Notes under the pieces: generated by a model | Database searches by the model: none | Seen by the model: only the letters and a program-made list of their open reading frames with translations | What the model was told of the DNA's origin: nothing | Source of the DNA: Isurus oxyrinchus | Taxonomy: Eukaryota | Assembly (NCBI GenBank): GCA_026770705.1 | Contig: JANJGN010000189.1 | Location: 124,001-188,000, forward strand | Length of the DNA stretch: 64,000 nt | Direction of reading: 5' to 3' | Part shown: positions 41,995-46,390 of the stretch, piece after piece | Position numbering within the stretch: the stretch's first letter is position 1 | How the letters are laid out: each line of letters begins with the position of its first letter | Program-made: the position numbers and the translations under genes

Positions 41995-42111
41995 CTAATA
42001 TCTACAGCAGATACCACAAGTCTCATTTGGTTCTCTCCAATTACAGCAGTGACAGCAGAATCTGCAGGGCCGCTGTCTGCTCATTCTCTTCTGGCGCTGC
42101 AGCAAGGAGCC
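41995..42111 (-). CDS. HAMP: Hepcidin exon 3 (furin site and mature peptide)
   Basis: ctgcttttccag|GSLLQRQKR MSRQRPCRFCCHCCNWREPNETCGICCRY*; eight Cys in hepcidin C-x2-CC-x-CC-xn-CG-x-CC pattern after an R-x-K-R site. Confidence 0.93.
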   Translation of the reverse strand, partial: GSLLQRQKRMSRQRPCRFCCHCCNWREPNETCGICCRY

Positions 42112-42569
42112 CTGGAAAAGCAGGAGGACAATAGGTGAGAACATTCCGGAAAGAAAGAAGGCATCATTTCAATCAGGCGCGTCATTGGAAGGAGGATGGC
42201 GCATTTCTATAGCGCCTTTCCCCTCCTCAGGATGGCCCAAAGTGTTCCACAGCTGAAGGAAGGACTTTTTCTGAAGTGAGCTCACCGCTGTAATGTAGGA
42301 AACGCAGCAGGCAATTCACGCACAGCAAGATCCCACAAACAGAAATGTGATAATGGCCCCGACTTTCAGTTTTTTACCAATGTCAGTTGAGGGATAAATG
42401 TTTGCCCCAGGAAAGTGGACATAACTCCACCCCATCCACCCCCCATCACCCCCTCCACACATACCCCCAACTCCTGACGCACTTCATTTAAATTGTGGCC
42501 ATGGAATCCTCTACATCCATCTGAGAGGGCAGATGTTGTCTCAGTTTAACATCTCATCTGAAAGACAGC

Positions 42570-42875
42570 GCCTTCAACAGTGCAGCACCCCCTCAGTACT
42601 GACCCTCCGACTGTGCAGCACTCCCTCAGTACTGACCGTCTGACAATGCAGCACCCCCTCAGTACTGACCCTCCAACAGTGCAGCACTCCCTCAGTACTG
42701 ACCGTCTGACAATGCAGCACCCCCTCAGTACTGACCCTCCGACTGTGCAGTCCCCCGCCGGTACTGACCCTCTGACAGTGCAGCACTCCAAGACTGACCG
42801 TCTGACAATGCAGCACCCCCTCAGTACTGACCCTCCGACTGTCCTGCACCCCCGCCGGTACTGACCCTCCGACAG
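42570..42875 (+). repeat. 32-bp satellite array
   Basis: Tandem cagtgcagcaccccctcagtactgaccctccga units. Confidence 0.9.
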
Positions 42876-43541
42876 CTCGGTAATTTCTCAATTATGCCTG
42901 GTGGTCCTTTTAACTCAGAGCTGAGAGTTGCAGAGAATCGAGCACACATCCTGAACTGACACTTGCAGTGCAAGTACTGGGAGCGTGCTGGTCATTTTCA
43001 TGCTGCTGTCTGTGGGATCTTACTGTGCGCCAATGGCTGATTCTTTTCCCACAGTACATCAGCGACCTCACATGAAAGAAAAAAAGCACTTGATTGTCTG
43101 CGAAACACTTTGGGATGTCCTGATGGTTGGAAGGCGCTAGAGAAATGCAAAGTCCTCTTTGTCTTTCACTCGATCCTCTAAGGTGTCTGTTGATTAACCA
43201 GCCTCTCGGTGTTTGATGTAGGCCTGGTTATAAACAGTTAGAAGGATCAAATATCAAAAGTGCTTTGGCTGACAGTCAAACCGATTGTGCATTCGGAGAG
43301 ATTAGATATGGTCTGCACACAATGACTCCAGTCTCTGGCACTGACTGCCGCCTGGGGTCTCCCTTCCACATAACACTCACAACTTGCATTTACACAGCGC
43401 CTCTGACATTGCAAAATGTCCCAGCCCACATTACCGGAGCGTAAATCAGAGAGAAGTCTAACACTGAGTCACATCTGGAGATATTAGGGTTAGGTGACCA
43501 AAAGCTTGGTCAAAGATGTCAGTTTTTAAGGAGCGTCTTAA

Positions 43542-43572
<31 letters not shown>

Positions 43573-44419
43573 GCAGAGAGGTTAAGGGAGGGTATTCCGG
43601 AGCTCAGGGCCCCAGGCAGCTGAAGGCACGGCCACCAATGGTGGAGCGATGGGAATCAGGGGGTCCCGGGAGATGCAGTAATGTCAGAGATTTTGGAGGA
43701 ACATCGGGACCGGAGGAGGTGTTCTCCTGCTCCATATCTCTCTCTCTCTTCCTCTCATCCACTCCTCCTCTCCCTGTCTCTCTCTCTCCTACTCTTCCTC
43801 TCAATTGCCCTCTCTCCCAATCTTTCTCTCCTCTCTCCCTTTTCCTGTCTCTCTCCCTCTCTCTCCCCTGTCTCCTTCTCCCACTCTGTATCTCTCCCTC
43901 TCTCTCACACTATTTTTGTACCTTTCGCTCACTCTGTAACTCTCCCTTTACTGTTAATTTCTCTCTCTTGGACAATCTCTCTTCCCTTTTCACTTTCCCT
44001 CACTCTGCATCTCTTCTTTAATTTCTCCCTCTGTCACTCTCTCCCACCTATGTTCTTTCCCTTTCACCCCTCCCCGTCCCACTCTCTGTCTCTCTCTTCC
44101 AATCCCTCCCTCCCCCATTCCATCCCTCTCTCCGACTCTCGACTCCCAGCCTCTCTTTAACCCACTCCCAGGCTGGATCAGTCTCCCTCTCACTATTCCC
44201 GGCGTGGGTTACATTTAAAATTCCTGTGGGGATATGTTCACTTCCTTGGAATTGTCTCTTCCCAGCTTTGCAAAAAAAAGGGGGGTGGCTCGATTTCAAA
44301 CATGCCTCCTGAGTATAACCGAGACAGACTGCCACTGAAATCAGCTTGAAATCAGAAAACTTTCTGTGGAAGAAACGAGCAGGGAGAAACCTTAAAATAA
44401 GGAATGAATTTCCACCTAC

Positions 44420-44476
44420 CGTGTCCGGGGAATCCACAGATTTCTCAATCGTCGAAGAACCTAAAGCAGTGTCAAC
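44420..44476 (-). CDS. HAMP: Hepcidin exon 2 (prodomain)
   Basis: ttctttctttttgcag|VDTALGSSTIEKSVDSPDT|gtaggt, 57 nt, phase 0-0, in frame with exons 1 and 3. Confidence 0.82.
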
Positions 44477-44884
44477 CTGCAAAAAGAAAGAATTTATCAG
44501 GGAGAAAGTGAGAGGAGGATTGAGGGAGAGGGAGAGAGAGAGAGAGAGGTACAGGAGAGAGAGGGGGAGGAGGACAGACTTGCATTTCTCTAACGCCTTT
44601 CACCACATCCCAAAGCATTTCACAGCCACTGAAGGATGTTTTTGAAGTGCACTCACACTGTAGGAAATGTGGCAGCTGATTTGTGCACAGCAAGATCCCA
44701 CAAATAGCAATGTGATCATGGCCTAGATCATCTGTTTTTGGTGATGTTGGGTGAGGGATAAATATTGGTCCCAGGACACCGGGGAGAACACCCCCTGCTC
44801 TTCCTCCAAATAGTGGCTGTGGGATCTTTCACACCCGCCCGAGAGGGCAGACGGGGGACTCGGTTTAATGTCTCATTCAACATT

Positions 44885-45230
44885 GTTGTGCTCCCTCAGT
44901 ACTAACCCTTTGACACTGCAGCACTCCCTTAGTATTAACCCTTCGATAGTGCTGCGCTCCCTCAGTACTGTCCCTCCGTCAGTGCAGCTCTATTTCAGTA
45001 CTAACCCTTCGACACAGCAGCACTCCCTCAGTACTAACCCTTCGATAGTGCTGCACTCCCACAGTATTGTCCCTCCGTCAGTGCAGCGCTCCCTCAGTAC
45101 TGACCCTCTGACACAGCAGCACTCCCTCAGTACTGACCTCCGACAGTATAGCACTCACTCAGTACTGTCCCTCCAATAGTGCAACACTTCCACACTACTG
45201 ACCCTCTGACAGTGCAGCACTCCCTCAGCA
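44885..45230 (+). repeat. 32-bp satellite array
   Basis: Degenerate tandem units. Confidence 0.85.
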
Positions 45231-45307
45231 CGGAGTGTTGACCGACGTTATGGGACTGAATTCCCTGGAGTGAGACTCAGACCAGAGATTTAGGTAGGGT
45301 TGTTCCG

Positions 45308-46110
45308 GCTGGAGGAGGTTACAGAGATAGGGAGGGTTGTAGAGGCTGTAGGAGGTAACAGAGATAGGGAGGGTTCTAGAGGCTGTAGGAGGTGACAGAG
45401 ATAGGGAAGGTTGTAGGGGCTGTAGGAGGTTACAGAGATAGGGAGGTGAGTAGGGGCTGTAGGAGGTTAATGAGATGGGGGGGGTTGTGGGGGCTGGAGG
45501 AGGTTACAGAGGTAAGGAGGGTTGTAGAGGCTGGAGGAGGTTACCAAAATAGATACTGCTGTAGGGGCCACAGTAGGTTACAGAGATAGGGAGAGTTATA
45601 GTGTGGAGAGGACGTTATAGAGTTCATGAGCATTGTAGGGGCTGGAGGAGGTTACAGTGATTCTGAGGGTCGTGGGGCCTGGAGGAGGTTACAGAGATAG
45701 GGAGGGTTGTAGGGTCTGGAGGAGGTTACAGAGATAGGGAGGGTTGTAGGGTCTAGAGGAGGTTACAGTGATCATGAGGGTTGTGGGGCCTGGGGGAGGT
45801 TACAGAGATAGGGAGGTTTATAGGGGCTGGAGGAGGTTACAGAGATAGGGAGGGTTGTAGGGGCTGGAGGAGGTTACGGAGATAGGGAGTGTTGTAGGGG
45901 CTGGAGGAGGTAACAGAGATAGGGACAGTTGTAGGGGCTGGAGGAAGTTACAGAGATGGGGATTGTTGTAGGGACTGGAGGAGGTTACAGATATAGGGAG
46001 GGTTGTAGCGGCTGGAGGAGGTTACAGAGATAGGGAGGGTTGTAGGGGCTGGAGGAGTTTACAGAGATAGGGAGGGTTGTACGGGCTGGAGGAGGTTACA
46101 GAGATAGGGA
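45308..46110. repeat. ~35-bp tandem repeat in hepcidin intron 1
   Basis: ggaggaggttacagagatagggagggttgtaggggct units. Confidence 0.9.
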
Positions 46111-46312
46111 GTCGCTGAGGAGGGATTGAAAACAAGAATGAGAATTTCAGGGGAAATGACAGAAGGAAATGATGTTAAATTCATAGAGGGCGACAATATT
46201 AAAGGCACGAACATAATAATATCAAACTGCGGAAGTGACCAGTCTATCTGGGTGGTAGATGTAGAGTCATGTGCAAGAAACACCTCACCCAGAGGGACAT
46301 CTCTTAGCTTAC

Positions 46313-46390
46313 CCTCGACAAGGAGAAGAAGTGACTCAGCTGCAGGGAGAGCAGCAAAGTCAGAGTGAACAAGACAAGTCGCCATTTCAT
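46313..46390 (-). CDS. HAMP: Hepcidin exon 1 (signal peptide)
   Basis: ATG...MKWRLVLFTLTLLLSLQLSHFFSLSR|gtaagc, 78 nt, phase 0; basic N-region plus hydrophobic core. Confidence 0.87.

Follow-up and report, generated by a model that had tools for sequence, protein, structure and literature searches.

In vertebrates, hepcidin is the master hormone of iron; we know of no antecedent of it before fish. Human hepcidin-25 (HAMP; structures 1M4F and 2KEF) and teleost Hamp1 are each encoded by a gene of three exons, the last of which holds the mature peptide, and their precursors comprise a signal peptide, a pro-region, a basic convertase site, and a peptide with eight cysteines in a shared order and six residues ahead of the first of them. 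The N-terminal residues of hepcidin are reportedly required for ferroportin binding (Nemeth et al. 2006; Preza et al. 2011; as cited in PMC8235187). Antimicrobial-peptide genes, and teleost Hamp2 too, typically combine a conserved pre-pro region with a variable mature peptide. The Hamp2 of sea bass has antimicrobial activity but no regulatory effect on ferroportin (PMC5665920). According to a review, the ferroportin cysteine that is bound by hepcidin first appears in cartilaginous fish (PMC8235187). In the open literature that we searched, shark hepcidins are almost uncharacterized, and no study is dedicated to those of chondrichthyans. We found one mention, in the plasma proteome of the nurse shark, where hepcidin figures among the proteins for which the whale-shark annotation has no orthologue; the word hepcidin is absent from the text supplement of that paper (PMC9207270). 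Here, we analyze a hepcidin-family gene in a 64-kb stretch of the Isurus oxyrinchus genome (contig JANJGN010000189.1, positions 124,001 to 188,000), which is hereafter called the window and whose own numbering is used throughout. The gene had been proposed in an earlier note made from the sequence alone.

Our analysis shows that the shark genome contains an intact, transcribed three-exon hepcidin-family gene at this locus. The earlier note had placed three phase-0 exons with canonical GT-AG borders on the minus strand (46390-46313, 44476-44420, and 42111-41995), and the coordinates, splice sites, and translations all proved correct. The exons are 78 (or 93, see below), 57, and 117 nucleotides (nt) long, so that both introns are in phase 0; the donors read GTAAGC and GTAGGT, and both acceptors are CAG behind pyrimidine tracts. 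The window copy has an unbroken reading frame and intact donors, acceptors, TATA-like box, and convertase site. The claimed layout of a signal peptide, pro-region, R-x-K-R site, and eight-cysteine peptide over three exons is present in full, as is the setting of short exons among repeats (31, 19, and 38 codons, with repeat-rich introns). In a six-frame scan of the whole window, the C-x2-CC-x-CC signature occurs only in exon 3; therefore, the window holds one such gene. Coordinates are collected in Table 1.

Membership in the hepcidin family is supported by exon 3 alone. Searches were run exon by exon or with one exon extended in frame into the unspliced flank. The 38 amino acids (aa) of exon 3 score 29.9 bits against the Pfam Hepcidin profile PF06446 (gathering score, 27; E = 7e-7; profile positions 24-52 of 53), a comparison that the earlier note had proposed for the spliced peptide. 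The eight cysteines lie at positions 7, 10, 11, 13, 14, 23, 26, and 27 of the predicted 29-aa mature peptide, in the order C-x2-CC-x-CC-xn-C-x2-CC. The hairpin loop (n) has eight residues, including one N-E-T sequon, and the mature peptide has an isoelectric point of 8.5 and a net charge of about +2.5. Among solved structures, exon 3 is matched best in sequence by the hepcidin of hybrid striped bass (1S6W), sharing the pattern CRFCC.CC...CG.CCR and differing by a four-residue loop insertion. A single-sequence AlphaFold (AF2) model predicts a two-strand hairpin (residues 18-24 and 31-37), with a predicted local distance difference test score that averages 66 over the model and is about 80 in the strands. 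For so small a model, a Foldseek search against the PDB gave nothing of use, its sole hit being an antimicrobial peptide with a hairpin (E = 9.4).

The precursor is most likely 88 aa long. When the transcript region is read downward of 46450, the first ATG is at 46405, in frame with the one at 46390 and 15 nt upstream of it; this ATG has a G at both -3 and +4, whereas the ATG at 46390 has a C at -3. The related basking-shark protein described below has the same MGSSQ start, that is, the same five extra residues. Because of its first position, better context, and agreement with the basking-shark start, we prefer 46405 as the probable initiation codon (31, 19, and 38 codons). The 83-aa product of the earlier note therefore stands as to its exon translations, but its start probably has to be moved upstream.

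Transcript contigs of four public runs were aligned to positions 41700-46500 at an identity of at least 90%. Runs X1 and X4 derive from one sample (organism A), and run X5 derives from a second, related organism (B). After the alignment cuts are shifted, the joints fall at 42111/44420 and 44476/46313, with CT..AC on the plus strand corresponding to GT..AG on the minus strand. They occur in 9 and 11 contigs of X1, respectively, and in 1 contig each of X4, so that both junctions which the earlier note had predicted for RNA are present; in 9 of the X1 contigs, the exon 2-exon 3 junction is written in the window's own letters. The word depth in X1 (not a measure of expression) is 1e5 to 8e5 for exon contigs versus about 1e3 for intron contigs, and X1 is an RNA sample in which the spliced form dominates. 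One X1 contig joins 44420 to 43222 within intron 2, skipping 1196 nt with GT..AG ends; 43222 is a minor alternative or cryptic acceptor. An X5 contig is about 90% identical over the exon 2/intron 2 border (44098-44447), and a spliced exon 2-exon 3 joint is also found in X5; thus, the second organism has the gene and splices it.

The transcripts are not uniform. The dominant ones in X1 differ from the window at three near-fixed positions of the 3' untranslated region (UTR), namely, 41792, 41871, and 41913. At 44421, in the last codon of exon 2, ACG is replaced by ATG (Thr to Met), with an X1 depth of 13,928 for the variant versus 2,475 for the window type; the same variant is present in X5. A minor X1 variant at 44475 changes the first codon of exon 2 from Val to Gly. 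Among the best-supported X1 variants listed, none differs from the window in the coding part of exon 3. That each junction is represented by several contigs hints at more than two variants and so points to paralogues in addition to alleles. Thus, the RNA proves the predicted splicing for this type of gene and shows junction contigs of the window type, but it does not prove this copy to be the main source.

A search seeded with exon 1 identified a relative in the basking shark, Cetorhinus maximus (XP_078389754.1; LOC144671611, isoform X2), an 88-aa "uncharacterized protein" that scores 44.8 bits on the Pfam Hepcidin profile. It is collinear with all three pieces of the window gene and has the same 31/19/38-codon layout. 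The two proteins are identical at 29 of 31 residues of exon 1 (94%), 16 of 19 of exon 2 (84%), and 20 of 37 of exon 3 (54%). When the precursors are split at the convertase site, the pre-pro part shows 52/59 identities (88%) versus 13/29 (45%) in the mature peptide (Fisher p = 5e-5); outside the cysteines, only 5 of 21 mature residues are identical (Fisher p = 1e-7 for non-Cys residues). The convertase site lies at the same place (R-E-K-R in Cetorhinus, R-Q-K-R in the window), and the Cetorhinus mature peptide also has 29 aa, identical cysteine spacing, and an eight-residue loop; the long loop is therefore not peculiar to the window copy. However, the Cetorhinus loop is Lys rich and lacks an N-glycan sequon. 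The N termini differ as well: the Cetorhinus peptide begins with M-S-H-L-S-V-C-V-Y, which is of the iron-hormone type, whereas the window peptide begins with M-S-R-Q-R-P-C-R-F. The former aligns with human THFPICIFCCGCC (T-H-F-P-I-C-I-F) and resembles the Q-S-H-L-S-L-C of sea-bass Hamp1 (PMC5665920).

An N terminus of the form x-[ST]-H-[FL]-x-[ILV]-C-x-aromatic is found in the basking-shark relative and in human hepcidin. In the window peptide, only Ser2 and Phe9 fit it; a basic Arg/Gln/Arg/Pro stretch has taken the place of His3 and of the hydrophobic positions 4 and 6. In consequence, the N-terminal x-x-His metal-binding motif of human hepcidin-25 is absent from the window peptide. Human hepcidin matches the basking-shark relative, but it gave no match to the window exon 3 at E below 10. 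The earlier note's designation of a hepcidin (HAMP) gene thus holds for the family, but the gene is probably not "the" iron hormone, since the ferroportin-type N terminus is lost; the window copy is not of the hormone type, and its basking-shark relative is.

Because of this loss, together with the combination of a conserved pre-pro region and a variable mature part, we favor the interpretation that the window gene is a diverged, secreted host-defense paralogue, antimicrobial or immunomodulatory and analogous to teleost Hamp2, rather than the hormone that controls ferroportin (probability, roughly 0.55 to 0.6). The occurrence of several transcript variants is a further Hamp2-type trait. Exon 1 would supply the signal peptide and exon 2 the acidic pro-region, and exon 3 would supply both the R-Q-K-R site and the 29-aa eight-cysteine peptide. 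After signal-peptide removal, a furin-type convertase would cut behind R-Q-K-R and free the peptide, which four disulfides would staple into the hepcidin beta-hairpin. Once secreted, the peptide would act in host defense and not on ferroportin.

Several observations weigh against this interpretation. For an antimicrobial peptide, the net charge given above is modest. Ahead of the first cysteine, six residues are retained, as is the aromatic Phe9 after Cys-Arg, and some binding of the window peptide to ferroportin is conceivable. The comparison rests on one outside relative, which is either an orthologue or a paralogue. The expressing runs, X1 and X4, carry no tissue label, and the dominant transcripts differ from the window in three 3' UTR positions and one codon (in alignments at 90% identity or more), so that other alleles or near-identical paralogues may be the source of part or most of the RNA.

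The foremost alternative is that the gene encodes the iron-regulatory hepcidin of the shark, or one of several: a peptide secreted by the liver and cut after R-Q-K-R that blocks iron export by ferroportin and whose lineage-specific N terminus co-evolved with shark ferroportin. The full hepcidin architecture and Pfam membership are consistent with this, as are the six residues ahead of the first cysteine and the aromatic residue at position 9, which human hepcidin and teleost Hamp1 share. The GGCGCC core of a BMP element some 170 nt ahead of the transcript start, the very deep transcript contigs in X1, and the hepcidin-binding cysteine of cartilaginous-fish ferroportin (PMC8235187) also fit. 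However, the residues at positions 3, 4, and 6 have been exchanged for Arg, Gln, and Pro while the basking-shark relative retains S-H-L-S-V, and the concentration of divergence in the mature peptide is the reverse of what a conserved hormone would show. Moreover, sea-bass Hamp2 has a similar core and does not regulate ferroportin (PMC5665920). A hormonal role is therefore unlikely in our view.

A second alternative is that the window copy is a silent or decaying duplicate and that the spliced transcripts come from near-identical paralogues elsewhere in the genome. This would account for the 3' UTR differences of the dominant X1 transcripts, for the excess of the ATG variant at the end of exon 2, and for the apparent presence of more than two variants. 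The differences are equally explicable as alleles of another individual, however, and the copy shows no sign of decay in its frame, splice sites, TATA-like box, or convertase site, while the 9 X1 contigs with a window-type exon 2-exon 3 junction speak for its own transcription. We regard silence of this copy as still more doubtful than a hormonal role. Finally, all exons are shorter than 40 codons and lie among repeats, as chance open frames with GT and AG dinucleotides in repeat-rich DNA might, but this reading is rejected on the Pfam score above the curated cutoff, the exact junctions in transcript contigs, the collinear annotated relative in another shark, and the single occurrence of the cysteine motif in the six frames of the window.

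Sea-bass Hamp2 shares the core C-R-F-C-C-x-C-C ... C-G-x-C-C-R-aromatic with the window peptide, and, like the latter, teleost Hamp2 lacks a Q-S-H-L-S-L N terminus; teleost Hamp2 occurs in multicopy families with a variable mature peptide. However, the window peptide has six residues before the first cysteine, whereas the N terminus of teleost Hamp2 is short or variable. Loop lengths differ too, with 8 residues in the window peptide, 5 in bass hepcidin, and 4 in human hepcidin-25, which makes the window loop 4 residues longer than the human one. Common descent with Hamp2 is unlikely, and the resemblance is probably due to parallel evolution; we use it as a working resemblance and do not class the window gene as a Hamp2 orthologue. 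The long shark-type loop together with the lost hormone N terminus may define a shark-specific defense-type subfamily. As a tentative extension, which we think somewhat less probable than not, sharks would have their own multicopy hepcidin subfamily, independent of teleost Hamp2 and amplified with Siglec genes. In such a subfamily, the pre-pro region would be frozen while the mature peptide diversifies, with an extended, possibly N-glycosylated loop and no ferroportin-type N terminus, and it would serve a defense or other non-iron role beside a hormone gene of the Ser-His-Leu type. The split between hormone and defense hepcidins would then have arisen at least twice in jawed vertebrates. When the two kinds separated, and whether they did so independently in sharks and teleosts, is a testable question.

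Table 1. Coordinates of the hepcidin-family gene and its candidate control elements (window numbering)
Feature	Position	Strand	Remarks
GGCGCC, core of BMP (bone morphogenetic protein)-responsive element	46619..46624	-	about 170 nt upstream of probable transcript start; lead only
TATAAG, TATA-like box	46477..46482	-	27-32 nt upstream of 5'-most transcript contig end
5' UTR, minimum extent	46406..46450	-	no ATG inside; X4 contig 46311-46449 runs on into exon 2
Exon 1, coding part, 31 codons	46313..46405	-	predicted signal peptide: basic n-region, Leu-rich core, hydropathy peak 2.7
Intron 1, GT..AG, repeat-rich	44477..46312	-	joint 44476/46313 (X1, 11 contigs; X4, 1 contig)
Exon 2, 19 codons, acidic pro-region	44420..44476	-	16/19 residues as in XP_078389754.1
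Intron 2, GT..AG, repeat-rich	42112..44419	-	joint 42111/44420 (X1, 9 contigs; X4, 1 contig)
Start of exon 3, end of pro-region	42085..42111	-	holds the proprotein-convertase site R-Q-K-R (42085-42096)
Predicted mature peptide, 29 aa	41998..42084	-	8 Cys; Pfam Hepcidin match
Stop codon	41995-41997	-	end of coding part of exon 3
3' UTR, minimum extent	41743..41994	-	X4 contig 41743-42031; also covered by X1 contigs

The promoter motifs in Table 1 are leads only. The meaning of GGCGCC as a BMP element comes from mammalian HAMP promoters, and the hexamer occurs twice in the window, versus 1.95 matches expected by chance. In a motif scan near the gene, a STAT-type TTCNNNGAA motif was absent from the promoter. 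Contig ends cannot prove the true transcript start. Downstream of the gene, a scan for poly(A) signals returned AATACA at 41713-41718 as the only hexamer of that type.

The hepcidin gene lies within a cluster of Siglec genes. Siglec V-set exons are found at 2779-3249(-), 6330-6818(-), 27512-28000(+), and 30969-31439(+), with Pfam V-set and Ig_CD22 matches above the cutoff; their best matches among solved structures are Siglec-5, MAG, Siglec-8, Siglec-7, and CD33 (E of about 1e-14). Ig exons at 62096-62653(-) and 63051-63701(-) lie on the other side of the hepcidin gene (Pfam Ig_3 and I-set). This arrangement is the shark counterpart of the human HAMP-MAG-CD22 neighborhood. The outcome is thus an RNA-supported model of a shark hepcidin gene, with a corrected start codon and with confirmation of an old HAMP-Siglec linkage. 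The proteins most similar to the V-set exon in the databases belong without exception to elasmobranchs, with 93% identity for Carcharodon carcharias, 81% for Scyliorhinus canicula, 69% for Rhincodon typus, and about 60% for skates and rays; the host is therefore a shark closest to lamniforms, in agreement with the cartilaginous-fish host that the earlier note had supposed.

The four V-set exons belong to an inverted duplication (2419-12986 and 19910-31799) with arms of about 10 to 12 kb that are 93 to 98% identical in several blocks; each arm holds two V-set exons, and the hepcidin gene lies outside the arms. The exons are of two kinds, one represented by 2779-3249(-) and 30969-31439(+) and the other by 6330-6818(-) and 27512-28000(+). 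In Siglecs, an Arg of the F strand binds sialic acid. One kind has this Arg in the F-strand sequence Y-F-F-R-I-E, while the other has Thr instead (Y-F-F-T-I-K) and may lack the usual sialic-acid binding. At the center of the inverted duplication, 16819-19082(-), are two open reading frames (ORFs) of 161 to 182 aa without a Pfam match, which look like retroelement remains. The paired Ig exons at 62096-62653(-) and 63051-63701(-) are nearly identical and about 1 kb apart, the second being broken by a stretch of N; they represent tandem copies in a Siglec-like gene that lies upstream of the hepcidin gene.

As the earlier note had surmised, genes of this kind are easily missed by annotation. With exon 3 as the query, lengthened in frame by intron sequence to make proteins of 31 to 100 aa eligible, a word-indexed search of a collection of 5.8 billion proteins returned no candidate; the collection therefore contains neither this protein nor any close copy of it, and the RefSeq entry of the basking-shark relative is named only "uncharacterized protein." A phmmer search of exon 3 against 1.84 billion representatives, for which the 38-aa query is too short to reach distant hepcidins, gave a single, spurious match, a 723-aa repeat protein that was rejected because it aligned on a Gln/Arg/Lys stretch. 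In the ESM Atlas, a hepcidin cluster ranked second at 0.75, below the level counted as evidence. The locus draws attention to a family of genes with short exons that are overlooked, or left without a name, by annotation pipelines.

Repeats of several types surround the gene. About 3 kb downstream of exon 3, a LINE (long interspersed nuclear element) reverse-transcriptase fragment at 38895-38966(-) is 92% identical to the last exon of XP_078389755.1, the basking-shark isoform X3, in which hepcidin exons 1 and 2 are spliced onto a LINE repeat in place of exon 3; the fragment is thus common to the window and basking-shark loci. Long low-complexity tracts with (TG)n-like runs and simple repeats coding for Ser, Leu, His, and Thr occupy 47700-53600 and 41300-41700, and several N-masked stretches flank the hepcidin gene. 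These tracts and stretches account for many of the long spurious ORFs in the window.

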